46,076 nucleotides of DNA. Source: Klebsormidium nitens. Taxonomy: Eukaryota; Plantae; Klebsormidiophyceae. The stretch lies in NCBI GenBank assembly GCA_000708835.1, contig DF237606.1, positions 1 through 46,076 of the forward strand. The letters run 5' to 3'. The notes under the pieces were generated by a model. It searched no databases and was not told the DNA's origin. It saw nothing but the letters and a program-made list of their open reading frames with translations. This document shows, piece by piece, positions 1-46,076 of this stretch. Position numbers and translations under genes: made by a program. Positions within the stretch are counted from its first letter, which is position 1. Each line of letters starts with the position of its first letter.

Positions 1-77
1 AACCACCTTGCACTTCACCCACAGCTGATGCAAGCACGTGAGGCACCTGACAGCAATGCGCTCCTGGCAACTCTTAA

Positions 78-1083
78 CACTAGAACCGTATATAAGTGCG
101 CCATATATGGCGCAGCTTGCCTCGTTCAAAATAAATGTGCAAAAACTGGAAAACGACCAAAAACAAATATTTTAAAATTATGGTAGGTTACAATTGACCC
201 TTTTCAACATATGTAACATCCTAACTTGTTGAAAAGTTAAAAGTTCCACCCACAACAAGCTTGGAAACAAATGCAAGCCGGAATCAGCAGGCTCCAGTTT
301 TGCCCCAGGAATAAGTGCTCCATATATGGCGCACTTAAATTTTTTGGCGGTTTATTTCAAGGGTCTACAAGCATTTTTTTCGCAAACTCCGTTCATGGCG
401 GCCTTTGGGGTGATCAAAGGATCTCGTACACACTCTTACATGTTTGAAAGCTCAAAAACGTGATGCACAAACCTAGCATTGGTTACGTCGAAAACTGCGC
501 CGTGAGAGCCCGATAAGCTTATTTGGTGTTCGGTTCGAACGTATCGGTGCTTTTTGATATGGATATCCTTTGGTGAGTTGTTGCCAACCTATTGTGGAAA
601 TAACCGGGCTTTTAAAATGACATTCCTCAAATTTTTAGAGACTCGGCGTGGGCAATTCTAGGCATTTTTCTGCATTTTTGACCATTTGTTAGGGCAAATA
701 ATTGACCAAAATAGGCAAAAACAACAGCATTTTCGCAGTTTCAGCCTTGCGGAACTTGAACCTCGGTACCTTAGGTCCAGACCACTGTGTACTAACCCGG
801 TAGACTATCCGAGCGTGCGGTTGGTCGTCAAAATTTAAAATATATACATAACACTACATTCTGCGCGACCAGCCTTTGAATGACGCGTGTTACCTACTTG
901 AAATATCGGCTGAAATTTTTTTCGGGTCGAAATCGAGTGCTAGGGGGGTACTAGGACAGGGTAACGACGTCGGAATCGAAAAAATGTTTAAAACGAGGCC
1001 GTGGCAAATTTGCAAACCTTTGAAAAGGAAAGTGCGCCATATATGGCGCATGCGCCATATATGGCGCACTTACGGTTCTAGTG
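78..1083. mobile_element. Non-autonomous piggyBac-like DNA transposon (1006 bp)
   Basis: Perfect 13-bp TIR CACTAGAACCGTA (78-90) / TACGGTTCTAGTG (1071-1083), flanked by TTAA on both sides (74-77, 1084-1087). Subterminal 18-bp palindrome TGCGCCATATATGGCGCA at 97-114, 1033-1050 and 1051-1068, plus an imperfect copy at about 312-336. AT-rich interior with no credible ORF. Confidence 0.85.
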
Positions 1084-1829
1084 TTAATGTCAACCCTAAT
1101 CTCACCGGAAGCGATGCTCTCTGCAGTACGCCGCTCTATCTGGCCTAACGCACCGCTGAAATGCTGAAGACTAGCATGAGACTCCATGGTTACCACCCTT
1201 CCTTGGCCTACTCTAAGGGGGGCGGACCTCCCTAAGCCCCGTGCGCCTCCACCTACCTCCTGCTACCCGGTCCGATTTTACCGGGCCCTCGAAGTTGCCT
1301 TTTGGACTCAACACAGTCTCCCTAAGTCCCTGAGCACCGACCTCGCTCGGTAGGTGCCCGGTCGGTTAGCCTTAAGTCCCGACCGTTTCGACGCGCGGGT
1401 GATCGAAAATGTCCGGAAATAGTCGTGGGGGTGGTGACGTGGCGTCCTCTACGGTACATGCAACAGAATTTACCGTCACTGCCGAATCCGGCACGAGCGT
1501 TAACGCATTTTCACCGTACGATCCGTCCGGGGCGATTCTGGCCGTCCAGATAAGCCTGAACTTCATTTGGTAGGCCCACGTAGAGTTAAGCTTGGCTCGG
1601 ATTTGACTTGCAAGGAGAGCCGTCAAGTTTGACGGGTTTCATTTTGCACGTCCAGCTTAGAAGTGCTTTTCTTGCCTTCCATGCATGCGCATAAAGCATT
1701 GAATGGAATTAATTAAGTTAAAACACTTTTTTCCACGTTGTCCAAATACCTGTTAGTATTGGCTCCGTGTGGCGACTGGCTCCTGAGCTAGCACAAATTG
1801 GCGCGCAAGCAGCTCGAAAAGTTGGAATC

Positions 1830-6800: not shown

Positions 6801-8349
6801 TCACTACGATACCGTCAAAGCTTTTACGAGATTCCCTTCTTTGGACGAGGCCACCAACAGATCTTGTAGGTGTCCTCCATTTCAGTCTTCCCAGCTGAGA
6901 TTGGAATCTTTCCATCGATTTATGTCACCCAAGATGGGCCTGATCAGAGGGAGCACTCGATGCCGCTTATGGCGACATCAGTACTGCAGATAAGGGATCA
7001 TCCGATTCTACGTCTATATCAAAGGGTCGATTCGTTTATAGATAAGAAAGGCTATAGATTTCCGTCTGAGTTTTGGCCTCGTTCCATCTGCAGGGAATGC
7101 TCTCAGGGCAGCATGCGCCCTGAGGACCACAATCCATTGGTGAATACACACCTCAAGCGCGCTGAAGAAAGATGCCTGAAGGCTTCGCATTCCTCTGTGG
7201 TCTGTCCTCCACAATCAGGTGAAATGAAAACCAAGCCACAGTAACAAGGCCAGTCAGCATGCGTCACGCGAAACTTCGCAATTGAGGCAAACTCTCGTTG
7301 ATGCTACTTCATTGAAATGGTGCAATACTAGCTCCTACAACCATTCAAAGCTCCAACCGATCTTCGTTTTGTGACTAGAGTGTAGGAAAAACCAGATACA
7401 AGCTTGAGAGTCAAAACAAAAGAAGCTCGGTCAGATGATTCTTGCTGAGGATTGGACTCAGCGCTTGCAGTCGGATGCAACGGAATCACTGGCATCAGAT
7501 TCAACTTAAAAGCTAAGCAGACGCAAAATTCAAGAGATGATGGTCTCAATCAGGTCCTTTTGCTTCTATTGCAGGTGGATCGCGCATGGATGCAGACCTA
7601 TTTCTGCTCCTCGACTCGAGCGCACAAGATAGTTTCGAGTTCCTCAATGCAACCAAGGAGCTCATTCCCAAAGGGCAAGCCATCTCCGCGCTTGAAGAGA
7701 GCGCACTATCGGGTCCTGCTCGTTCAAGTATCTCGGTCGAAGTCCAAGGACAAGAACCTGAAAGGTTGACGCGCCGAGCACAAGACCATTCTCAGGTTGG
7801 TTTTCTTCATGGTTTACTTGTCTGTCGATATCTTCCTGGAATCGACCCGATCATGTGAAGAGTAGTTCTTAGGTGCACGGAAACAAATTCGTTAAATCCT
7901 GAAAGTCAAATTGCATCATAAGTGAACAGGAAGCCAAAGAAGAGTGCCAGCTCAACAGAGTCCTCTGAGAAACTGCAAATCATGTGCAAAGTCGATACAG
8001 GAATCACCACTTCATATCATTCTTTACAAACTTGAGACTCGAGGCAGGATCTACATCTTCAGTCGAGAATTTAAGAACAGAACATTTGGACTGACTAGCT
8101 TGAAGCGGAAGGGTGAAAGGCTATTTAAGAATGATTTCTGAATGTTCTTCCACAGGTTAATCTAAAAGCTAGCCAAATTACCTTTGGGTTTGACAGTTTT
8201 GCTTAAGGCCTTGACTCTTGTTTTCGCAGGCTGCCAATTTGGAAGCTTCTGTGAGTCTTCTGTGCCATGAAGGGAACACTGAGATACTGTATAGCAACCC
8301 CGTGACGATCAGCCGGAGGGAAAGCATCGACGAGTCAAGTGGAGAAGGA

Positions 8350-11300
8350 ATGGAAGCAGCTCAAGGGGGATCCCCCGCCAGCCAAGAGATGAAGCAGAAC
8401 TCAACGGCCGAGGGAGAGCCAGGAGCGTGTACCATCCTGCAGGCAGAAACCATCAACGAAAGCAGAACGGAGAACCTTACGACGACATTGGAGACGACCG
8501 GCACCCCTGAAGACGGTCAAGCTGTTCGTGCTTCTGCGCGAGGAGAACACCTAACTCCTCTGAGCGAGGCTTTTCGGACCGTAGACACAGGGCGTCCGAA
8601 CGGGCTCCTGTGCGTGGCGAAACGGACGCAGCTCCCCACCCTCCTGGATAACTCGCCCCCACAGCAACCGGCGTCAGAAGATGGACAGGCTCCGAAAAGG
8701 CTGGGTTTTGCGGAAAAGAAGTTCGGGCGAGATTTTGAGAGCTTTATTGGCGAAGAGCGGGCCACGGGAACATTGGGGGAGAACCCTGACTTGCGCGCCG
8801 GCTCGTTGGACCAAGCTGAAGATCGGGGCCCTGTGGAGAGGTCTCTTGGTGGCGTCCGCGGCTTCAAGAAGGGCCTGCGGACAGCCTTCCTGAGCCGCGA
8901 CAGGGCCCGGGATGCGGACGGGTTCTTCTCCGCGAGGAGGCTCCCGCGCGCCGCGCGCGCGGGCGATCCCGTTTCTACACAGGCTGGTGTACAGTCTGAC
9001 CAGCGAAGCGAGGCGCTTCCCGGGCAGCCGCTCTCAAACGGCCTCAAAAAATTTGATGGAGTGTTCCCGGAAGGATCTCCAGCAGAAGCGCCCGGTCCCT
9101 TCGACCGAGAACTCCTCACCAGCTTGGGCATCGGCAAGGATTCATTGGAGCGGGCGGCCGGCAGCTCCCCAACGGCGGTCCTCTCGCCGCGCGCGCTCGT
9201 TGCGCAGCCGCCCGACTCCCTCAGTCTGGCCCACCTTTCACCTCCTCTCCAAGCGTATCAGGGAAACACAAACTTCCCCAATCACTATCATTCCCCTTCA
9301 AACGTTCCGGCTTTTGCCCACTCTCCCTCAGCCCTGGATTTTCTCAACTCTATGCAACTCCCGCCTTTTGAGCCTTCTCGAGCCCCGCCGAGCCTCTCTC
9401 AGTTTCTCCAAAGGCCGGAAGTAACTAGATCGGAGGACTCATTTGGTGCTGAGCCGGCCGAAGAAGCCGCCCCGGGAATCTCGGGGTTCAAGTCAATGCT
9501 GCGGAAGAAGCAGCAAGTGCGCCCGGGGAAGTCTACCGAGCCCAACGCGCTGCCGGTTATTCTGGAGGGAAAGCCGGTGGAGCTGAATAGGAGGGTCTCT
9601 GCCAGCCCGAAGTCCCCAATGGTGAGCGAACCAATCTTACGCTCTGCCTTACTGTTCATTTTTCGAAGTGCTCTTTCACTGCCGTGTTTCTGTCTTAAGT
9701 CAGCCATACTTTTGAGACGCAAACTTTCTGTTCTGAAAGCTTAAAAGCCATCGGGTTAAGATTCTTCGTTTCGTATTCGCCGATTTGCCGAAGTGTCTTC
9801 AACCTCCTCATTGCCGAGTTTCAGTCTTGGCAGAGCTTTACATGAATCAGATGCGAGCAGGAGACGAGAACGATTATTAAGTCAGCCCCTGCCGGAATTT
9901 GCGTTCCACGGTCTTCTTTCCAGGAGCTTCATCGCAGACACCTTTCCGAATCCAAGAAATCAAAAGATATGAAGCGACCTGTATCTCGTGACCTGTTCGG
10001 TCAGAATCAAACAGATAAGCGGCAGAAAGGAATGTGCTTTCTCTTTACCTATTCCGGCAGGATCTGGTGGAATCGGATGACCCGGTGGGAGGAGCCGAGG
10101 ACGTAAACGGACGGCGCAAGCAGCCCGGCCGCGGCGTGAAGCGGCCGGCCGCCAACTCGCCGTCGGCAGTGGGCAAGCGCAGCTCGCAGTACCGCGGCGT
10201 GACGAAGTGAGGAACTTCGCAACACAGTAAAGTAGAATGTTATTCAAAGCAGTAGAACCTATGAAGGCTTGCATATTCAAGCTTGAGAGTCCTGCCAAAA
10301 GAAGACTGGAGCAAGCAGCTTGTGTCTCCGGATGTTGCTCAGATCGTTGATTCGTTGTGTTCTTTCCAACGACCAGGCACTGCAGTACTGGGCGTTACGA
10401 AGCTCACCTGTGGGACAACAGCAGCCGCAAGGAGGGCATCAACAAGAAGGGACGACAGGTGTACCTGGGTGAGCTTGTACTCTGAAGCCGAGCAGATGGA
10501 GGCATCTTCGCGGCCGCCAAAATGCTTAGTCTTTCTGCGGCTCATCGACCTTCAGAGATCTCCAAACTGACCCCGGAAAGATGACGGCTTCGCGTCTGAG
10601 CAGCTCTCAGATTTTTTTGTAGCAATCGCAAAGAGATGCTGTCAACGATGAAAGTATTTCGAGGCATATTTAGGTCTGTAAGTCTTTTCGCTTTCTATCC
10701 GGTCAGGCGGGTACGAAAAGGAGACGGACGCAGCCCGGGCGTACGACCTTGCCGCTCTCAAGTACTGGGGCGTAGGCACCAACTACAACTTTCCGGTAAG
10801 CTCCAGCGGATAGCGGACTCTGAAGGCTTCCTCAATTCAGCGCTTACACGATGGTGTAGGAGCGTTCCTTCGGGCTATGGGAGGGAAGTTTCGAGTCAAG
10901 CCTAATCGATGAGGTACAAATTAGTTGCTTTCCTGCTGCTTTTGATGACCTGCGTCTAATCAACAACTTTCCACCATGGATTTGCAGCTGAAGGACTACG
11001 AACAGGACCTCAAAGAGATGGAAGACGTGTCTCGCCAGGAGTTCGTCGCCACCCTCAGAAGGTGAGGCGAAATTGAGGAGCATAAGAATAATTGATGCCT
11101 CATATGAGCAAAGAAGGAAGACATACCTAAGGCCCTCATCTTCGTATGATCGGGTTCGCTGGATTGCGCCCTTGCAAAGGACTCATGAGTTCAGCCGTTC
11201 AGGTAAAGTTGAACGACATTACGCTGTGCACCCATTGCCTTTTCGAAGCAGTACCCTCAGAGAAGATTCAATCCTTCAAAGAAGCCTCAGAACATGGACC

Positions 11301-23276: not shown

Positions 23277-23475
23277 ATACTGGTAACTCCGGAGTGACTT
23301 AACTGGTGAGTGACTTAAGATTCACAAACCCCGACCAAACAAACTTAAAAACCCAACCCAAATAATCACCCGCTCCGCACCCGAACCCACCCTAACCACC
23401 ATACTAACCCCACCCGTCCCCCGGGCGCCTTTCTTAAGTCACTCGCCTGTTAAGTCACTCTTTAGTTACCAGACT
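23277..23475. mobile_element. MITE of about 199 bp with 41-bp TIRs and a 9-bp direct flanking repeat (Mutator-like)
   Basis: Inverted repeats 23280-23320 and 23432-23472 match at 36/41 positions, and each contains GAGTGACTTAA twice. CGTTACCGG lies at 23268-23276 and 23476-23484. The exact boundary is ambiguous by 1-2 bp. Confidence 0.7.
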
Positions 23476-27700: not shown

Positions 27701-30700
27701 TAGAAGGTGTAAAAGCTTAATTTGAGAGGCATGGAGGCTCAGGAGGCGAAGCCGGAACGTGTGTCCTCAACCAATCCTTCAAAAACTCGACCAATTTTTC
27801 CAAACTTTAGATACGAAAAGGTCATGTTGTTTGACATCAAAACCTAAGGCAAGATCAGTGCGGATCGCATCCAACAATGCTTGGAGTGTCCAGTAGAAGC
27901 AAGACAGCATCTACGAAATGCACCCCCCATAGGTTGACTGTTCAGTAAGTTCTACAAAAGCCAACAAGGAATGTCCAACGAAAATCTTTGGGTCGCTGCC
28001 TACCTGAATGGAGCCGTCCGCCAGTCCTGCGGCCATGGTTTTGCCACCTGGCCCCCACGTGCACGTGGTCACAGAGATGCGCCCGGGGCGGGCTAGCTTG
28101 GGCTTGACGACCTGGAGAGACGGCAGCAACTAGGTTCGGGAACTTTCTGCTCAAATTCAAGCCGATTTGCCCGTTTGGTAAGCTCAAGAGTTGGCAGACA
28201 GAGTCGGGAAGCAGACGGACCAAACGACACGAGCGCTGACCTGCAAAGAGGCGTCCTAACTAAATTGAGGAAGTTTCTGCGATTCGAGGAAGTGCGGCCT
28301 TGGCAAGAGATGGCTCGAGCCCACAGGAAGAATTTGCAAGCTACAGTGATTGTTCATTTGCTGGAGACTATGCCCAAGCCGGCCTGCCTACTTTGCGAGT
28401 CAAAACAATCAATCGAGTAGCTGCCACTCAGCAGATCCGATTCGGATCGAACTCAAGAAAGATGGTAGAAAAGAAAGGATGACTTGAAGGCAACGCCACT
28501 GGGACGGGGAGGGTTGGTTTCAGGGGTTTGGAGTGCGCAGGGGTGCGGAGCAGGTACTTTTTGCATTAGGATCTTTTGCGGAGGTCGATTTGAGTATATT
28601 CTTGGGTGACTTTTTGTTTTCTTGAGTTTCGTAGATGCGGCCCAGGGGGACCAGCTGCGGCTTCTCTACATCACCTGTTAGCAAATCTGAAAGTCGATTC
28701 AAGCACAACTAGAGAAGCAACGACGGCTTGATCACCTAAAGCCAGCCACGCAGAGAAAAGCGCCTGTAGGCCTACAGAGTGAGGATTTGAACTCGGTTGC
28801 CAGAAAAGGTAAATCCAAGTAATAGTGCAGCGCCGGATTGCGGCGCCTGAATAACGACGCTGCCAAAAGCACGTCGTCATCCGAGAGTACCGATTTGAAC
28901 AGCAATAATTGAGCTCTTCGGTCGCCAGAGGAAGGTAAGTCCCCTAACGCCCTCTCAACACCAGCAGAAGCAGACGCGCTCCAAAAAACAGTCAACCCTC
29001 GCCGCATCGTCGCACCTGCTTCTGCTGCTTGAAGTTGGTGACGTCCCAGATGCGCACCGTCCCGTCCTCGGATGACGTCAGCGCGGTCTGCCTCTCGGCG
29101 GGGTGCCACTCGCCGTAGGTGCAGCCCGTGATGTGGCCCTTGGTGTTCTTGGCGTCGCGGATGTACATGTCGCCGCGCACAAACTCGCCCTGGCACGCGC
29201 CGTCACGGTCGTAGATCTGTGGAACAAGAAAGCAGGAATCAAACCTCCTTCTGCATATCTTGCTTAATGCACACCTCTCCATGTATAAGCTCGCTCTGGT
29301 AGCGGTGATTGCTTTGAAAAAAAGACGCAGTGATTGCTTCTGAACTTGCTGCATGTACATGTCGCCGTACACAAAATCGCCCTCGCACGCGCAGTTGCAG
29401 TCGTAAATCTGCCCAGCATCAAAATAGATCAATGACAATTTGGCTAGGAGTGGGTTTGCTTCGTTAAAAACCCGAAGCGAAAGTAGTCTCTGTAGTTACG
29501 TTGCGAAGGTCGGAAGCTACTGAAGAAGGTTTCGAAAGGAGCCAGGTTCCCGATCATGAGCAATACAAGACGTTCAGGCCAGATGCATCGGACTCGTCCT
29601 GCTTGTCCCCTTGAAAGCGAGTAGCCAGAAAGTGTGGCTTGACGCAATTGCATCATCGCAAACGCACTGGTTCGCTCGAGCACCCCAAAACACGTGCAGA
29701 GTGGAACACACAACAAGCCAACCTCTTGATACATCATTGAGGCTGTGCCGTGGTTTTAAGCCACCTTCTCGAAAATGCAGTCACAGTGCAAGTCCGGTCA
29801 ACATCTTCAACTTGCGATCATTCCGCTTCTTGTTTGCCCAGCCTGACCCAGTGACCTGGACCAGATCTCAAAGATAGTACTCCACAGTATTCCTGGTCAT
29901 CACTTTCTTCGCATAACCTTAGACTTACGCATCTATTCCGTCCAGGATAAAGAGACCCTCTCACCTTGGCTTGCGCCGACCCCGTAACCACCAAGAAGCG
30001 GTCCGCCGTCGGACTCCAGCTCAGCGCTCGCACCGCATGCCCCTCGCTCGGCTCCAAGTGCCGGAAGCTCTTCAGCCGTGCGTCCATCCCGTTGAAGTCA
30101 AACATCTTAACCACGTAGTCGTAACCCCCGGTTAGCACCCTTGACCCGGTTGGGTCCACCGCCAGCGCCGACACGACTCGCGTGTGCCCCTTGAGCCGGA
30201 TCTCGTGCTCCAGCGGTATCCTGTACGGGTCCGAATCCGTTTCGTCCTTGTCCGAATCGGCTGACTCTGCGTCCGAACCGTCCGACTCCCCGTCCAAACC
30301 GGCCGAACTTTTTCCAGGGGGCTGTGGGGGCCCCACGAGCTCCTCTGGGGGGGGTCGCGGTGGCCCCACAGCCACCCCCCCGTCTTCGTCTGATCCCCCC
30401 GAAGGATGGGGCGGCCCGGCAACCCTCTCTTCCTCTTCCTCTTCTGAACCGTCTCTTAAACGATCTTGCAGAATCCTAGCGTCAGAACCAAAAGGCCCTG
30501 TCGTAGCTCCGTTTCCACTGGGGCCAGCCCTGTCGAACTCAGGCTGACTGGCCCCAGCAGGGCCTCTGACCGCATTCATTCCGCCGTCTACTCTCGCCCG
30601 CTTTGCAGCCGCTTCTCCATTCTCCCCTTCCCTGGCACTGACTGGGCGCGCCAGTGCTTCCTTGCCCCCCGGAATGACAGAATCCTGAGCAATGCTGGCA

Positions 30701-30870
30701 CCCCCAATGTTGAATGCAATCTTCCCCTTTTTCGGAGCTGCCCCCGCCCCAGGCCGTTTCGTTTTGCTGTGCACGTTCTCGAGCGCCTCGCGCTTCGCCT
30801 CCTGGCGGCCGAAGCCGGTGGGGAACGCGGCGCGCAGGCCCTCATGCATTTCCGCCTCGTCCTCGACCAT
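24755..30870 (-). CDS. WDR70: WD repeat-containing protein 70 / gastrulation defective protein 1 homolog (701 aa, 7 exons)
   Basis: Exons 30870-29965, 29216-29016, 28111-28004, 27661-27518, 26880-26626, 26072-25749 and 24922-24755; all introns GT-AG, phase 0. Motifs: LRAAFPTGFG, LKGHTRVVSALAVDPTGSRVLTGGYDYVVKMFDFNGMD, GDMYIRDAKNTKGH, IHNPHALPLFRE, GPGMKGRIG, EEDPREAILKHA. Confidence 0.95.
29353..29411 (-). repeat. Intronic duplicate of the WDR70 exon-2 acceptor and first 19 codons
   Basis: 50/59 nt identical to 29161-29219. It encodes IYDCNCACEGDFVYGDMYM versus IYDRDGACQGEFVRGDMYI and keeps a CAG acceptor 192 bp upstream of the normal one. Confidence 0.85.
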
Positions 30871-33635
30871 GACGCCATCCTGCGATCGCAACAAACGATA
30901 TGTATTGCGCGTTTCTTGTTGATCTCTTCGAGGTTTCATCTTCAAATGATGCGAACACGGTGGGCTTCTAATGGCTGCGGCGCAAGACATCACCTCAGCC
31001 TGGTTCTCGACTACTCATGCCATCTGGCGACAACGACGTACAAATCTGTTTTGATTAGCCTTTCTCGTTGACTTCCTTCTATTTGTTCCTCCCAACTTGT
31101 GCAACTCGGTTTGGTTCAACCCTTGCCCTCACCGGTTGCCTCACCAATCTTCAGCCAGGAAGCTCAAGTTGAGGACTATGGTCTTACGAATCTACTCAGA
31201 AGCTGTTCCTTGTCTGTTGGGCCTCGATTAGCCTGATCAACTTTGTTTGACCATAGTTTCGGGGTGCCACGCGGTGCAAGGTCATGTCAAAAGCGCGTAG
31301 CGGGTGAAAGAAATACCAGTGGGGCGAGAGAGAAGGAGACGAAGCTGGTCTTGAGTTGATCTGCTGCCCATCTCCCATCTCGCTTCCTGATTGCCAAAAA
31401 GTGCTGTCATACCGTAGCACAATGATTTGCCCTTCAGTCCTACCACGAGTAAACGATTCCTAATCCACGCTTGACCAGGTATGAACCACACTCACGCAGA
31501 GTCAAGGATCCCTTTTTTCATTAGCAAGATATGCCTGAATGCAGAGAAGACCTCCCTCAGCAGAACGAGCTCAGAACGAGCTCAAATCAACCACTTCAAA
31601 CCAGGAACGTTGAACCCCAAGCGCATGCTCACTGTGAACTTAATAACTTGCCTAAACCCTTCTAACCGTGCTGCAAACCACGAACGAGACTCACCGGAAC
31701 CGGGCCAGCCTCGTCATCCTCATTATCCTCTTCTTCATCATCCCCAGACTTGGCCCCTCCGTCTTCCGCCGCGCTTCTCGGCCCTTGAAAGAAGCTTGCC
31801 TGCTGCTGAGCCTGCAAAGCAAGGACAGAGTATTGGTCAAAAGGTTTAAAATCCTTTAAATTGGTACTGGAGGCCTACTTCAGAAGCCTGAATACTAGTC
31901 TGGAACACCATCCTGGTCAGCAGATTGAGTGACTGCATTTGCAGCAGGAAGGTTATGCCCCTCTTACTTCTTGCATGCTCCTTTTACTGCTTGTATGCGT
32001 AAACAAGCCAAATAACCCCAAGATTTTCAACAATGAGGGTTGGCAAAAGCTGTTCCAAGCAAGAGCTCTCCTTAGAAGGTATGCAAATCAAACCTCAGTT
32101 TGTGGTGTTTTAGTGGGGCAACTGAGGCCAGTCCTGATATGCCTCTCCCCACTATCCTCTCCAGAAGCAACCTACGCAGAAGCATCTCTCCACTGCATCT
32201 TCTTCCTCTCTTCATCTGCTTTTCAACAGGGCCATATAAAAGAAGGGCGACTTGAAAAAGGCCTAAAAAGGGACCCCGCAAAAGTGACTAACACCACCCC
32301 TAGCCATCCTAACACTGTGTTTCATTCTCGCTGCTGCAAGATGGGGTGGCTCCAGACAATACCTCACCTGCGCTTGCGCCCTTCGCTGCTTCTCCCTCAA
32401 TGCCTCAATTGAGCTCCAGCCCCCATCTGGAGACAGCAAAAACGAAGATTGGAGAACCGACCGAGAATCAAAGAAGGTGCTCCTTATAAGCTGTGGGCAT
32501 AGGCATGGGTCAGCAGTGCGAAGAATGACGAAGAACACAGCATCCAGCAGCAGAGTTCCTAGAGATTATTATGTGGCTCTCAAAGATACAATGATTGTAC
32601 TCACAGGACGCCCTTTTTGTAGGATAGGTGGCGGCGCGGACACAAACAAGATGATGCTGAACGGCGAGGGGCTGTGATTGAACATGTATGAGCGAGCGAG
32701 TTGTTTTGTCTCCAAAACAACGTCTTTTTCGACCCGCACAAGCGTAAGAAAGGAGTCACAAGAACCGCTCGCAATTGACATTGACGTGTCAAGCAGCCAA
32801 CAGCTTACCTGTCCCCGGCCTCTGCCTTTCTTTTGCCGCCTGCCTCAACGCTTGCTGCAGCAAGAAGAATCAGTGAGATATCATTGAGGGAAACATATAG
32901 CGAGAAGCGGCTTGTTGCAACGGGTTACAAGAGACATCTTAAGGAGAGGTGGTTCCGCCGCTGGAACAGCGCTAAACAAAAAGCTATATGGACACTTGCG
33001 TCCCCAAGCAATTGTAAGTCATAAAGAGACTCTGATGGCCAAAGGTGGTCGTACCAGCTCAGAGTCCTCATCATCTGAAGGCATTGTGTTGCCCTGTCCC
33101 TGCCGCTCGGAAGCTTTGTACAACAGCTAAACTGATGTTCTCTTTTTCAAAAGCCCGTGCCCAGCAAAAACGTGCTGGTCCTACAAGACACAAATTTCGT
33201 CATGGCGTCTTCCTGCAGGCCAGGATTTTATGCAGCCAGAGTTTGAACTTTGCTGCTGCCATGGCTGCTGCGGCTCTGCGGGGCTTTGCTAAACACTTTT
33301 GCGCAAGCAAAGGCACACCCGCACATTCTACAGCTGCGGGTTATTAGAGCGCACAGTCCTGAGCGCGCGGCTGCTAATACGTGCCGCGCAACCGCTCCCA
33401 CTTTCGGCTTACCAGGTTTCCAGCATTCTGCATTCCAGCATTCGATGTCATGCATGAACGTTCTGTACGAAGGGATTCAGATTCAATGGAGGGGCACGAG
33501 CTGCTTGCAGCTCAGATCAGGAGTTGTGCAGCAGTGGTGGTTGAGCCAAGTAAATCTTCTGGGCCTAATGTACCAGTCACATATGCTCATGAAGCGTTGC
33601 ATTGAGCATCGTTTACATAGCAGCATTGCGTGTCG

Positions 33636-36600
33636 ATGGATAGTGAAAGGTTAGGCGAGATGAGGGCGCTGGTCATCTTTGCAAGGCTCCCTGTCCCAGG
33701 AAAAGTGAAGACAAGGCTGGCTGCTGGCATTGGCCCCGAGGCAGCAGCCTCCTTCTACAAGGCCATGGCGGAGCAGATTGTTGTCGAAAGCGCAAAGTGA
33801 GCGCAACCTCTTAGCACAAGGCAAAGCATGATAGCGAGCTTGAAGTAACTGAAAGCTTCCATTAAAGGAATTTCATTCTGACCAGCAAGTTTTGAGGGTG
33901 TCGCTAAGGAATAGTGCATGTAAGCCAGCTGCTGCCGTCGCGAATGTGCTCTGTTTGAGGATCGTTTGTTTTCTCACAGGATACCTTAGAACAATTTGTT
34001 AATGTCAGTGTTTGCTTGAGATTGACAAAACAAGAGATACGAAGTCCTTCATGGATATATGGACATTTTAGCAAGATCAATAACATACCACTCATGTTTA
34101 CTCTCGATTGCGAACTGCCAGCAAGGAAGGTCTTTGTACACTAACAGCTCCGCTGATGATCATGGAACGCTTTCCATTACAACCTTATTTTGCTTCTTCT
34201 TCAGATGCAACACAAACATAGTGCGGTATCTCTTCCATTCAGAGCCGAACGACCGAGAAGGGGTCCAGGAATGGATGGCGGCGCTGGGGCAGAAAGACAC
34301 TCTGAAGCTTCGAGTCCAGGTATGTCTGCCCTGTGATATCCACAGAAGCTCCAGATCCAAGATCGATTAAATTAGGGTGTGGTTGTTGCAAAGCAGAAAG
34401 CAGACGGGCTGGCTTTTTGTTCATCACCTCAGTAACATTAGGTTGCTGGTATGGATTTCTGCCTCGGCAGAAATTCCGGCAAAGCACCACATGCACTGCT
34501 GTGGGCCCATTGGCTCTGTAGTTTGTAGAGATGGCATGACATCTGGAGGCTAAAGATGAAGGGGCTCCAGGATACTCAACGGCACAGTGCGCATGGGCAC
34601 CGGTGCTGTTGGAGGAGGGTCAGGTCAACGCCTGGAGCATGTCGTGCCTTCACCCTTGACCCTCTGTGTGCAGTCCACCAAAGGAGATGTCGGAGGCCGC
34701 ATGCGGGACGCCTTTGAAGAGGTTTTCAAGACCGGCGTTGATCAGGTGCAGTGTTTTCACTTTCCTTCAACCCTTTTCTTGGCAGCATGTTCTAACCTTG
34801 ACCTTGCCATCACGGTGCGCTTCTTCCGAGCTTTTTCCCGGTTGTGCCTCGTCACGTGCCCCAGACTTGGTCTTCGAATTTGAGAACAAGCTTCTGGTTG
34901 AGGGTGGCCTTGGAACTGTCGTCACACCCGCGGCTGATTGAAAGCCATCACTTTTGAAAAGTCGAAACGTTTCCAAAAGGTCGTGACCATCCTAAACAGC
35001 ACTCAGAACACCATCCAGGCCAGCAGAAAGTGCAGTACGACGTCGCCCTCAAACTCGACCGTTTCTCGACTTCGAATTGCACCCTTGCGCATCCTAGACT
35101 CAACACACTGGCCGAGTTCTGCAGAACGCTCGCTCGCAGAAGTTGTGGGGCATAACTCGTTGTTTTCAGGACATTGACCGGAAAGTCGTTCCAGCTTCCA
35201 ATTTTGTCAGGCCTTTCTCGTGTCAGAGCCGGCTTGCTCACATGATGGATATGCGCCAGAAGCATTGCGTTTCGCGAGGACCCGATTGTGTCACTGGCAT
35301 CCTTATTAAAATAATCAGTGTAATCGACCGATGGTACAAGCTTACGAACACAGTATAGGCGAGAGAAAAGCGACGATTTTTGCTCGCAGGTGGTGCTGAT
35401 CGGAACCGACATCCCGGATTTGACGGCGGACGTCATGGAACGGGCTTTTAAAGCGCTCGAAACGGCTGACGTAAGCCACTCCTTCGTCTCACATCCGGGC
35501 AAGAGAGACGGGGTTTTGACGGCGTCGTGCCTTTTCTGACGACAACAAGGCCGAGAGATGGGCAATCTTGCATACTGTTTCAGACTGATAGTCATATATC
35601 AGGGGTTCGTCGGGCTTATAATGTTTTTGAATCGGAGATCACAGAAGCAACGATGGTCTTGTAGAAGATGCATCTGAGTGAAGGACTCCACTGGTTGTCC
35701 ACGAAGAGCGGTCGCTTAAGCCTTTCGACTCTTTTGCAACTGTCACGGCCGCCCGCGCAGGGCTGTGAACCTTGAATCGGGGCTCCGAACAGTAAGAGCC
35801 CGGACAAGGAGAATAAGTCTTCGCACAATCGGAACCGGGGACACTGTTGGAAAGGTGATGGCGTGGGGCCGCTGAGCTTTCCGCTTGTTAGACCCGTCAG
35901 ATGTTTGGAGAATCGCATTCGGACGGTTTAAAATGACATTGTGGGTAGAACCTGCACAGGTTGTGCCTCCGACGTGGTTTCCGAGGCAAAGCTTAGAGGC
36001 CGTCAGATTTGAGTTTAGGAATGCATCAAGGGCTGAGAGCACCGCCGTCGCACCGACTCCGTCCAACAGCGTCCCCGATTCTGATTGTGCGAAGACTTAT
36101 TCTCCTTGTCCGGGCTCAGTAAGAATCGTTCAGGTTGCGTGGTCCAGGCGCAACAGTCCTTTTCTTGGATGCTTTCGCTCTGGTCCAATAAGCAATTGAG
36201 TGGAACGCACTCACTTTCTCTCCCTAAGCTTCGGTTTCCCTTCACATGCTGACGGCGGCTGTGCTCTGGTTCAGGTCGTACTGGGGCCCGCCGCTGACGG
36301 CGGCTACTACCTTATCGGGCTCAAGCGGTTGCACGAAGTCCTTTTTGAGGTGAGGGCTTGAGTAACAACTCCAGCGGTTATAGAACCATTTGCTTGTCCG
36401 TTGATACAACGGGGGATTCAAGAACGAACATCAAAAGCGGACCATTGCCGCAAGGCTCAAAGTCATGACTCCGCAACTTTGAGCGACGAGTTTTAAGTTC
36501 TGTGAACCCAACTTCTTACCTACCAACGAAACTTAGCCCCCCTCAACGGAGTCGGGATGTCATAGTTTCAAAAATGTATTTGACTTCTGTTGTGTTAGTC

Positions 36601-39001: not shown

Positions 39002-42000
39002 CTACGCAATCTGGTGCACCCATATCGCGCTGATCTTGGGCGCTTGAGGCACACCCGTCGGGTACACTTGCAGGCTGAGGATTCCCTCGAGACCCACTTG
39101 GATGTAATTGGTGACGACCGGGGCCGCAGCGTAGCTTTTATGGCCCGCCTCCTTGAAGGGGTCGTAGCCCAGCACCAACCAGTCGCCGTTGTAGTTCAGG
39201 TTGAATGTCCGCTGGCCATCTCCTGTGACCAATCCCGGGCCGCCAGGTGGCTGCGGGCCGTACGAGATCTCGGCGAAGAAGGCGTCCGACTGCAGCAGGA
39301 CGAACTCGTAAGGCTCCCTTTATGTTCGAAGATTCGCTGGCTCGTACTACAAACTGGGCAGATCAGCGCGGTGGCTTCGGCTTCTCACACGCACAGGGGC
39401 AAATTATCAATGCGGAATGAGGGAGAAACACAGGGCAGATCTGTGACAGCCAGCCGTAAGCCATGACCATGTCCACCTACGTCACTTAACGATGCAGCCT
39501 TTGAGAATTCAACAGCACAACGGAGTCGAGCAGATGGTAGCAGCTCAGATCCAGAGTGCTCTTACGATAGCCCGCAACAGCCGCACGTCCTTGTTTCGAA
39601 AAGGTGATCTGCACAAAAACGCCCATACTCGCAGCTACTTGTTTTTGCTGTTCCAACAATACGTTTTTCGGCAATTCCGACATCAGGCCTTCTTACCTGG
39701 TACAGGCCGGGAGGCACGCGGAACTTGTACGTGTTGAACCCAATCCTCTCACAGCGGAAGATTGTCGGGTCGTTCGTCTGGCTGATGGGGAACGTGTCGT
39801 TCAGGCAGAAGGCGTACCCGCCCTGAGGCCCCTTGATGTTGGTGCGGCAGTAAGGGGAGTTTGCAGGGACCTGCGTAAGTGCAGAACAGAGTGGTCACGT
39901 CACGTGTTTGAATGAAGGTGATGAAGACTCCCGAGTGCTTTATTGCCGCGCTTGAGGAAGCTGAACAAACCGATCTTGGGAGTTCCCTGATCGAAGAAAG
40001 CCAAATAAACCAGAGAGGACCAACGCTGGGCCGGGTACCCCAAATCCCAACAAGGTAAACCCGGCCGAAAGCTTCAAGGTCCAGAATCGTTTCTGTACAG
40101 AATCGGACGCATTCCAGCTCAGAAGCTCTTTTCATCATACAAAAAAGGGTCTAAGCGTGGCCTTGGCAATCTGCAAAAGTCCACTCGCTGCTCAATCTTT
40201 ACGCAAACAGAATTCTTACGTTTCTGACCCACGCATGTTCCATTTGCTCAAAAAGCTTGTGGCCATCTGCATCGAAATGCAACTCACCACATTGCCCGGG
40301 TCGCACTCCACTGTATCGGCGTGGAACGTCACCCCGAAGGACGAGTTGTAGTCCTTGAAGTCCCCGCACACGACGGCGTAGCTGAACCCGCCCGGGGGAA
40401 GAGGGAAGGGCAGCTGAGGGATGGCTTGGGCGGGGCCGGGGGCAGGGGCAGTCAGAGCCGGAAGCTTAGGGAGGCTCGAAACTGCCGAACAGACGTTGAA
40501 AGGTTTAGGGTTCGGTTCGTGCTTCTGAGGGATATAGGTTTGGGCTGAGGGCACTCGGCATTGGAAGCTTCATGAACTGCGGCGGGTTAAAATTTGAAAC
40601 TAGAATGATTAGGGTTTTTTAGGTCTTCGGGTTTGGCTGGATGCAGGGGCAGTTAGGGCCGGCAAATTAGGGAGCTTTGCAGCTGCGGCGATAATCCGGG
40701 AGTTAAGAGAGACGTGTGTCAAAAGCGCTGGGCTTCTTGTCCGACAATTTGTGGGAGCTTCCGCTCGTCTCCTTGGCATCGGCGTCCTGTGTCTATCATT
40801 TTGCTTCAGATTCTGAAGCAGAAAGGAAAGATCTCTAAGAGAAGGAAAAGATACTGAAACAAACATAGGATGCAAGTGCGGGACTCTTCAACAGCCCCTA
40901 CTTAGGAGCTTTCGCTTTTTTGATTTTAGGTCAGCTTCCGCTCCTCTCCTTGCCGATTGCATCTTTTGTGACTCGATTCTGGTACAACATCCGCCGCAGA
41001 TGGAAAGACTACCAAAACAGAAAAAGCCATCTTCTAAGCACAAAACCCGGACCAGGATCCACCAATCAGCCTGACCAGTCGCAGAGGCAATGTCCTGGTC
41101 ATCTGAATAGAAGGGAAAGATAGGGCTTGGCTACTCCGAACTTCTTCTCGGACCCTCAGCGCCACTCGATGCACATTTCGCGTTTTGCTAGAACCAAGAT
41201 CAATCACAAAGGGCCATAAGGAAGGACCAGCACAAGCCGGCGCTCATTCTTCGTATGTACCAATCGCACTTGAACGCCCCAGGTGAAAGAACGTGCTGCT
41301 TTGTCAGCCTACTTGAAACAACAGCACAGACCGACAAAGTGCAGTACTTGACAGCGTGATACATAAGCCACCTCGCTGAATACAGAATCCCCCCGCTGGA
41401 CACTTGCCGGGCAGACTCCCATTTGCGTTTCCTGGGCCGATGAACAGCTTGCGGAGAAAGTAAGGGCAGCAAAAGCACGGAGTCCCAAGACAATACTCAC
41501 CGGTCAGATTCCCTGTTGCGGTAGCAAGGCCCGGGTGGATGAACAGCCCGTTGATGATCGGCTGCCCGACCACCGGCACGAGATCAATCTTCAACGTCCC
41601 TGACGTCACCACCACCTCCTTCTGAATCACGAGCGCCGTCCGGTTCCCCCCGCTCTGGTTGAAGATATCCAGGTTTGCAATCGCGAGCGCCCCCTGCAGG
41701 TTCACGCTAAAGACCCGCTGTCCGGACCCGACGCCCGGCTCGATCTCCGCGAACTGCAGGTCGACCGCGTACTGGCCGTTCGGGACCGGGATGTTGTACG
41801 ACACGGGGCCTTGGAGCGCGGTTGCATAGACAAAGTCGTCGATGCCGGTGCCGATGGGGAGGAACACCTGGTAGGGTGGGTACGAGCCGGTCGTGGACTG
41901 GGGGTTGAGGGCGACCACCCGGGAGTCGTTGGCGTTGTAGTAGGCGTCCTTCTGCAAGGGGTCAAGGTTTTGGGTTAGGCAGTGGTTACTGAGATCCGGT

Positions 42001-44958
42001 TTAGTAATAGCGTGGCTCGGAGGACATTCGGGAGTGGATACGTGGTTCAGATTCTGATCCAACAGGTGTTCAGCCGGTCTGATCAGATTGCCGGGCCTTT
42101 TAAGGAAACTGCCCTTACTTCGAATCAAGCCTCGCCTTTCTGGTTCACACCTAGGCAAGTTCTTGCGAGGAGCACATTCACTGGTGCTGAAAAAACAAGT
42201 AGAATCGTGCCTCTGGTGTAGTGCGGCTTCTAGATCACCGACGTGGACACCAGCTGTGTGTTAAATGCAAAGCGGACCCTATTACCATGCCGACGCCCTG
42301 TTTTGAAGCTTCCGTCCTCTGTGTTCTGCATGCAAGCGTGTCAGCATGTATTCTGTGATGATGAAAAGGCCTGCATGTGAGCCGAGTCTCAATTCAGTCT
42401 CGCAACCAAGAGCTCACCTTGTAAACTATTCCGAGGCCGCTAAGGACATCCATGATTGACCCCGAATCAATCCCCAGTGAGAAGTTGCCCGTGGCGTTCG
42501 TGTTGGGGTAGCATTTGATCCCCGACACAGTGGCGTTGGACTTCAGGCTCCCGAACAGCACGTCCCCCACAAACTCCAGCTTCAGCAGGCCGTTCGTTAC
42601 CGTGACCGGCTGCTTAACCACCAGCGGCACATTGTAACCGACCGTCGCGACCAAGTCTAACTGCATGACTGCGGGCACGTGGTTAATCTTAACCGTGAAG
42701 ATCCGCTGCGAAGGCTTGGAGAAGACAAACTCGCAGAGGTGGAGCTCGACGACGTACTCCCCATTGGGAACGTTGATGAGATACTGAAAGTCGTTTTCGG
42801 TTCTGCCGGTCAAGTAGAGCTGCGCATCGGGGCCCTTGTAGGTTACAGGCACCGGGTACAGCTGCTGAATCTCAACGGTGTTGTTGTCTGGGGTTGTGTT
42901 GGCGGCCAGGGTGTTATTGTCGGGGAGGGTGTTGTTCCGCACAACTGCCACGGTTGCGTTGGGAACGGCTGCGGCGGTTGCGTTGAGGAGGGTGGCATTT
43001 GCCGGGCGGGGGAGCGTGGCATTTGCCGCGGTTGTGTTCACTTGAAGGAGGTTCCTGCCGACCCGCGAAGTGATGTTTGCAGGGGCCGTCGCGGTGTTGT
43101 TGATGAACTGGAGGACTGTGATGGGGCCAGCATCGGTGGTGAAGAACTTGTCCCCCTCCCAGACAGACCCGTCCGCAGCTCTATACTCGCCCCCCCCGCA
43201 GTTGATGCTCCGCGCAGTTGGAGGTGGGGGAAGAGCGGTGAACTGGTCGTTGTCGTACACGCGGATGCCTCTGATAGACGGCTCATAGATCCGCGGCACG
43301 AGTGTGACCAGGAGCAGGCCGTTTGTGACTGTCACGTTCTGAGTGGTGGCAGTGACTGCCTTGTTCTTGGCGCCAGCCCAGGCAAAGGGGTCAAAGTAGG
43401 AGTAGGCCACCTTGCCCTGGTAGAGAATGTCGAACACCCTCTGGTTCGAGCCAGAGTACAAACTCTCCGCAGCAAGAAAGTCGACCGTGTAGATGCCGTT
43501 GGGGAGGTTGATGGCATATGCGAGATCCTGTGCCAGAGAGATAAACATCAGCAACTAGTGGAGGGGAGTTTTGATCAAATCTTGAACATGTTCTTGTAAT
43601 GCTGGCACCGCCTTGATTCACTCAAGGGAACACCAAATGACTATGTTTGGCCTTTTCAAACTGCTTACCTGTATCAGTCTCTGAGCTTTGCTGTCACATG
43701 AGTAGACTCTTAACGGTCAGACTTGACGCAAGCATACTCTTATTTATCGAGCAGGTTGTTACATCCAGCGAGATGGACATATGCAGGGCAAAAAAAGCTT
43801 CGGGCGGAATTCAGCGGTATAAAGGAATCAGAAGCACGTCAGCTCAATGTCGACCACAGTAGTTTTGACACAATAAGTGGTTATAGACTGGTAAACCACA
43901 GTTGTTACATGCAAAAAGCGATGGCTGACTTTGTATGCAGCATAGACATGGTCAGAGCTGCCTGAACAAGGACTAGGTCAAGCAGAAGTCGCATACTCTT
44001 GGTTTTGCACCACCGGATGAAATGTCACTGCAGACTTTTGGAAAAGCTGGCTTTATCTTAATCCCTAACCGGATGACACCACAGCTTTTGAGATGGTGTT
44101 GGCAAACATAGAGTGGACAACTTGAGGCATAGTTCAAGGGTTGACTTGCCATTGCGGCAGTGCAAGGTGGCATCCGGTAGAAAGACTCAACAACCAACTG
44201 TGCTCCTGTGATTAGCCAGCAGTTGATTTTGTCCAAATAATACGTCATCTAGACCTCCAAGAGCGCAACATTGCATAAAGCAACTACCTTTCTCCAGACT
44301 TTGTCAATTGCTCCAACGTCGATTCACCAGAACCAAAACAACAGCAGGTCAATCTTGTCTGTACTGACACGACAAGATGCCACTTACCAGACCATAACGC
44401 TCTGTGATAAAGATGTAGTCGTCACCATTGTAGGCATTCGTCTGCAGAAAGAAAAGACAACAGTGATGAAATCAGATCTTGGACTTTGGCATACCACACT
44501 GAGGAGCTATAGAAGATTTGCAGAAACACTCTCAATTATACTTGTAATGTATGAACGTCAGCATGCTAGCTTGGAGCCAAGTATTGAGCAAGTCCGGAAA
44601 TGGTCAAAAATAAAAGCCAAGAGAGAGGGCTACTCACAACGTTGATGTTAGTGGTGTCATTAAGTGTGCCATGCCCTATGTTCCAGTCTGTAACATGGTT
44701 GCTGCTTCCGTAATAGTAGCGATCTGTGACAAATGTTGTCGGCGGATTTGTCTTCTGATTCTTGTTCACCCAGACAAACTGGTTATTAGGGTCATAGATG
44801 GGACCTGGACCGTAGCTGACGCCATCGTAGTAGATAGGAAGACTTGGTTCCGCTGTTGTGTTTCCCCCACAATTGATCGCAACATAGACAGCAGACACAG
44901 ACTGGACAAGGAAGAATGCTGCGCATAGACAAGCCGCTGCATTCAGAGACCGCGCCAT
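39002..44958 (-). CDS. Secreted protein with four malectin carbohydrate-binding domains (about 844 aa, 7 exons)
   Basis: Exons 44958-44638, 44441-44388, 43527-42418, 41951-41501, 40424-40288, 39870-39697 and 39289-39002. Signal peptide MARSLNAAACLCAAFFLVQSVSA. Four repeats of (A/S)INCGG...(T)ERxG..F.Y.I.VPNG.Y.V.L.FAE...QRVF. No transmembrane segment or kinase before the stop codon. Confidence 0.88.
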
Positions 44959-45794: not shown

Positions 45795-46076
45795 ATATGG
45801 CTGTACAAACGATGGCGGAAAGGGGCTTGGACGACCTCGGCCCATGCAGGGATATCACACATTTTCGGTGGGGAGGAACTGTAGTTGAAAATTGAGGTTT
45901 CCAATCACCCGTCTGTAAGAAACCCCTGACTTTTGCAGTTTTGGGGGGTTTCTTACCGACGGGTGACTGGAAACCTCAATTTTCAACTACAGTTCCTCCC
46001 CACCGAAAATGTGCGATATCCCTGCATGGGCCGAGGTCGTCCAAGCCCCTTTCCGCCATCGTTTGTACAGCCATAT
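45795..46076. repeat. Long near-perfect inverted repeat (132-bp arms, 18-bp loop), reaching the window end
   Basis: Arm 45795-45926 versus the reverse complement of 45945-46076 matches at 129/132 positions (mismatches at 45857, 45904 and 45914). Confidence 0.95.

Follow-up and report, generated by a model that had tools for sequence, protein, structure and literature searches.

A TTAA-flanked, putatively piggyBac-type non-autonomous transposon in the streptophyte alga Klebsormidium nitens

What kind of mobile element occupies the 1,006 bp between two TTAA tetranucleotides near the end of a Klebsormidium nitens scaffold, and what sort of transposase would move it? The window, by which we mean the whole stretch of DNA that was analysed, is a complete scaffold of this streptophyte alga (46,076 bp), and the element lies within an intergenic region 73 bp from the left scaffold end. 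The ORF beside it is 100% identical to KFL_006570010 of K. nitens, in agreement with a preliminary description of this DNA, which had assigned it to a green-lineage genome. The first exon of KFL_006570010 (DUF7148), given here for context only, occupies positions 1830-2222 on the plus strand (approximate limits, taken from the ORF). The start codon of this gene is located ~740 bp downstream of the element, and relatives that are 72-74% identical are present on Logan contigs. Other coding sequences of the window include an uninterrupted 508-aa ORF without a Pfam match at 8218-9744 (plus strand, region GC 55%), a WD40 ORF at 29818-30993, and two neighbouring ORFs with malectin domains at 41304-43554 on the minus strand (E 1e-31 and 4e-18), which are probably exons of a single malectin-domain gene.

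The borders of the element can be read directly from the sequence. TTAA is found on both sides, at 74-77 on the left and at 1084-1087 on the right, as a putative target-site duplication (TSD). Immediately inside, the left 13-bp terminal inverted repeat (TIR) CACTAGAACCGTA (78-90, plus strand) is perfectly complementary to the right TIR (1071-1083, minus strand). With the TTAA included, the inverted repeat is matched at 17/17 positions, and the two ends are complementary over 41 bp at 90% once a 4-bp TATA indel is allowed. The outer flanks read ...GCAACTC on the left and TGTCAAC... on the right, with no further direct repeat outside the TTAA; the empty site would read ...GGCAACTC-TTAA-TGTCAACC... 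TTAA is rare in the window (119 sites per 46,076 bp, 0.26% of positions), and a search among all 119 sites returned no TTAA-flanked TIR pair free of mismatches other than this one. In Markov simulations, such pairs occurred at a mean of 0.16 even when 2 mismatches per 12 positions were tolerated. We found no second copy of the element within the 46-kb window.

Inside the TIRs, both ends carry an 18-bp palindrome. One perfect copy, TGCGCCATATATGGCGCA, is located at 97-114 (bp 20-37 from the left tip, LE20-37). Two tandem perfect copies of TGCGCCATATATGGCGCA fill positions 1033-1068 at the right end (1033-1050 and 1051-1068, corresponding to RE34-51 and RE16-33), and a left internal copy with 1 mismatch is found at 316-333 (bp 239-256 from the tip), within an extended palindrome at 312-337. 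TIR and palindrome are 6 bp apart at the left end and 2 bp apart at the right one, so that the spacers are unequal. The tandem right copies extend, when flanking AAG/CTT is included, into one perfect palindrome of 42 bp (1030-1071). Each site consists of half-sites TGCGC/GCGCA placed 8 bp apart around an ATATAT centre, giving TGCG-N10-CGCA overall. Elsewhere in the 46 kb, no sequence comes within 3 mismatches of TGCGCCATATATGGCGCA (expected by chance 0.01). The arrangement is non-random. The anatomy recorded in the preliminary description, that is, TTAA and 13-bp TIRs at 74-1087, a palindrome 6 bp inside the left TIR and a tandem pair 2 bp inside the right one, the 42-bp palindrome, a distal imperfect copy near 312-336, and TGCG...CGCA symmetry with unequal end spacing, agrees in each of these points with the coordinates given here.

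The interior between the palindromes of the two tips (115-1032) is non-coding and richer in A+T, without an ORF of recognisable origin; the GC content of the whole element is 0.425, as against 0.52 for the window. No credible coding capacity was found inside the element, which we therefore regard as non-autonomous. Its longest ORF, used as a protein-search query, had 0 look-alikes in the protein collection, and there was no piggyBac-like Pfam match in the 16 ORFs of the window that were scanned (23 ORFs of at least 150 aa in total). Neither Rfam nor ARAGORN reported an RNA family or a tRNA inside the element. On the minus strand at 720-830, a T5 run comes after a B-box-like GGTTCAAGTTCC. A tRNA-derived unit at this place was considered and rejected: neither ARAGORN nor Rfam detects one, and shuffled sequences fold at least as well. 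Rfam miRNA matches on the 42-bp palindrome were likewise dismissed as spurious, being far below threshold.

Non-autonomous elements are usually classed by their termini and TSD (PMC4455052), and the TSD is the decisive feature available for the choice of superfamily here. TTAA, the duplication that characterises piggyBac, is present on both sides as read from one copy. TTAA is itself palindromic, and a single copy can also be parsed as a TA or TWA duplication. Tips of piggyBac elements are usually of the CCYT type; the CACT tip of the element agrees with this type at 3/4 positions. The preliminary description had reported that the TIR matches that of Trichoplusia ni piggyBac at 9/13 positions, and comparison with the TIR printed in PMC5861402 reproduces this figure (P about 0.001). 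This identity is weak evidence because the En/Spm (CACTA) TIR fits about equally well (8/13), and the T. ni piggyBac and En/Spm TIRs match each other to the same extent (8/13). The palindromes of the element (LE20-37, LI239-256, RE16-33 and RE34-51), as far as can be judged from their positions, follow the piggyBac layout and so lend support that is specific to this superfamily. Palindromes in subterminal position as such, however, also occur outside piggyBac. Taken together, TSD, termini and palindrome arrangement make piggyBac-type the best reading of the element. We infer from these sequence features that a non-autonomous member of the piggyBac superfamily, a cut-and-paste DNA transposon, has inserted at TTAA here, with a probability of roughly three in four. 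The assignment to piggyBac proposed in the preliminary description is thus retained as the best reading of TSD, termini and palindromes; it is read from one copy, and the TIR match offered in its favour does not discriminate.

Several other readings of the same bases have to be weighed, and most of them depend on how TTAA is parsed. The element could be of Tc1/mariner type (Stowaway-like). In that case TA would be the duplication, ACACTAGAACCGTA a 14-bp TIR, and the T and A on the outside chance neighbours. The sequence allows this parsing, as TA sits within TTAA, and in many genomes no class of MITE is commoner than the TA-targeting one (PMC5199201, on insects). However, both a chance T at 74 and a chance A at 1087 would be required (about 1/16), the resulting tips would be atypical, and subterminal palindromes that are single at one end and double at the other are a piggyBac layout. 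We therefore consider a Tc1/mariner origin unlikely. Tc1-like elements have an IR/DR layout, unlike the palindromes of the element. Somewhat less likely again is an origin from Kolobok or Sola3, as other groups that target TTAA, or from an undescribed TTAA-specific family. Kolobok elements make TTAA duplications and occur in chlorophytes, but the rule that their termini read 5'-RR..YY-3' fails for the CA..TG ends found here (PMC9587614). Slightly poorer than these as a candidate is a Tourist-like element of PIF/Harbinger type, which would have duplicated 3 bp. Moving one tip by one base lets TTA or TAA appear on either side; the tips then become unequal by one base, and the extra flanking base has to agree by chance (about 1/4). 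In addition, the tips of Tourist/PIF elements are G-rich, and the CACTAG tips of the element are unlike them.

The tip sequence itself brings in CACTA (En/Spm) transposons, of which the element might be a non-autonomous member that has CACTA termini and subterminal repeats and whose 3-bp duplication has decayed. The tip does read CACTA-G, the TIR agrees with the En/Spm TIR as given above, and subterminal repeats are present. Yet the 3 bp adjoining the tips differ (TAA on the left, TTA on the right) while the 4-bp TTAA is perfect, and there are just four repeat copies, all of them palindromic; En/Spm has many oriented 12-bp motifs. We consider this origin highly improbable. The least probable reading of all, to which we give hardly any weight, is that of a chance or structural inverted repeat that was never mobile. 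Its only support is that no second copy is seen in the DNA searched. Against it stand the 17/17 inverted repeat and the confinement of four 18-bp palindrome copies to its interior (expected 0.01), as well as a GC content of the element below that of its surroundings.

We also looked for relatives of the element and for its transposase. An exact pattern scan for the TIR plus palindrome returned 0 matches in viral contigs, and so did strict and looser scans of metagenome contigs and a scan of prokaryote genome contigs. The left end of T. ni piggyBac, scanned against the viral contigs, had 0 matches as well. The DNA searched thus consisted of viral, metagenome and prokaryote contigs and, from K. 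nitens, of the window. No link between the element and any sort of transposase was found there, which counts against the piggyBac reading.

Under the piggyBac reading, mobility of the element would depend in trans on a DDD enzyme of piggyBac type encoded elsewhere. We infer this protein partner and its binding to the element by analogy with the solved piggyBac and piggyBat complexes. The preliminary description had taken the intact TIRs and TSD to point to a recently active family and to an autonomous transposase elsewhere in the genome; here, too, both count as proposals. In such a scheme, the transposase dimer would use its catalytic core to grip the tips (13 bp each) along with the TTAA beside them, and cleavage would take place at the TTAA/tip junctions. 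A dimer of the C-terminal DNA-binding domain would sit on the 18-bp palindrome, with its G/C-rich half-sites and A/T-rich, bendable centre; the copy at 97-114 is a putative site of this kind (compare PMC5861402 and PMC7351741). The end with two abutting sites may draw a second dimer. Since one end would offer a proximal and an internal site and the other two abutting ones, an asymmetric and probably tetrameric synapse could result, of the sort that has been proposed for piggyBac and that it needs. In piggyBac, the dimer of C-terminal domains binds and bends its palindrome, and activity in cells requires unequal ends (PMC7351741). CRD dimers on A/T-centred palindromes, together with asymmetric ends, are the established mechanism of piggyBac and piggyBat (PMC7351741, PMC11707139).

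The preliminary description had further stated that piggyBac is rarely reported from green plants. This claim is weaker than it was worded: according to a 2017 survey, the superfamily occurs "in eukaryotes, except in plants" (PMC5381638), but in 2025 its presence in "land plants and algae" was already on record (PMC13461360). Klebsormidium is not named in the searched portion of the text of PMC13461360, and the papers searched included none that links piggyBac to Klebsormidium or to streptophyte algae. If the assignment is confirmed, a streptophyte alga would join the hosts of piggyBac, and a compact, apparently undamaged end pair would be at hand for tests with the cognate transposase. A stronger version holds that K. 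nitens harbours a live piggyBac family whose ends keep an insect-like three-place layout of TGCG...CGCA palindromes. We regard this as a tentative proposal, with the odds against it. If it were true, recognition of the ends by a dimer of C-terminal domains would be either very ancient or horizontally transferred across kingdoms, and the mini-element with its cognate transposase would provide a TTAA tool that is native to the plant lineage and works seamlessly. Of these points the layout of the ends deserves more interest, but the locus adds no new kind of system.

Three other repeats were noted in the window. At 23280-23472, a short MITE-like element carries inverted arms of 41 nt (88% complementary) on either side of an A/C-rich core; since TTAA sits inside each arm, it does not count as a TTAA-flanked element of piggyBac type. 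Another MITE-like element, of 322 bp, is located at 35796-36117 and has 56-nt TIRs that are 95% complementary. Exactly at the right scaffold end (45795-46076), a 132-nt inverted repeat (98%) encloses an 18-nt loop and may be either a foldback sequence or an assembly artefact.

How closely does the element resemble systems that are already known? CACTA/En-Spm transposons share with it a CACTA tip, a 13-bp TIR and subterminal repeats; they differ in the duplication, as the 3-bp one is absent here and a perfect 4-bp TTAA flanks the element. Kolobok elements share the TTAA-specific 4-bp duplication and are known from some green algae; they differ in the type of their termini, 5'-RR..YY-3' versus CA..TG (PMC9587614). 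Within piggyBac, "Group 4" comprises elements of fungi, land plants and algae, and like the present element it occurs in the green lineage (PMC13461360). The element is only a candidate member of this group, which is the likely home of the cognate transposase.

The similarity to piggyBat of Myotis lucifugus concerns the TTAA target, the presence of several palindromes for CRD dimers on one end, the asymmetry of the ends and the A/T-rich centre of the palindrome (PMC11707139). In contrast to the element, piggyBat has three sites at 44-bp spacing on its left end and none on the right (PMC11707139). Neither the palindrome of piggyBat nor the fold of its CRD is related to its counterpart in T. ni piggyBac. 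The piggyBat tip also begins with CACT.

The comparison with T. ni piggyBac (IFP2) extends over more features. Both elements have TTAA flanks, and their TIRs show the 9/13 identity described above (PMC5861402, PMC7351741, PMC5381638). The CRD sites of T. ni piggyBac are located at LE17-33, LI180-196 and RE45-61 and read TGCGT-N7-ACGCA, that is, TGCG-N9-CGCA (PMC5861402). As in the insect element, the subterminal palindrome has outer TGCG...CGCA bases and an A/T-rich centre, and sites are found close to both tips, with an additional one ~200 bp into the left end; the "left internal" LI180-196 is paralleled by the copy at 316-333. The spacing from the tips is also unequal between the two ends in both. 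The differences lie in the tip (CCCT in T. ni piggyBac versus CACT), in the half-sites and their distance (TGCGT, 7 bp apart in a 17-bp site, versus TGCGC, 8 bp apart in an 18-bp site) and in the spacers (3 and 31 bp versus 6 and 2 bp). Unlike T. ni piggyBac, the element has two abutting perfect sites at its right end, carries no transposase gene and resides in a streptophyte alga. Hence, at the level of sequence, the likeness covers the outer bases, the type of centre, the internal site on one end only and the unequal ends, but not the exact spacing. Overall, the analogy suggests that the insect rule, in which a C-terminal dimer meets an A/T-centred TGCG..CGCA palindrome on unequal ends, may hold far outside animals.
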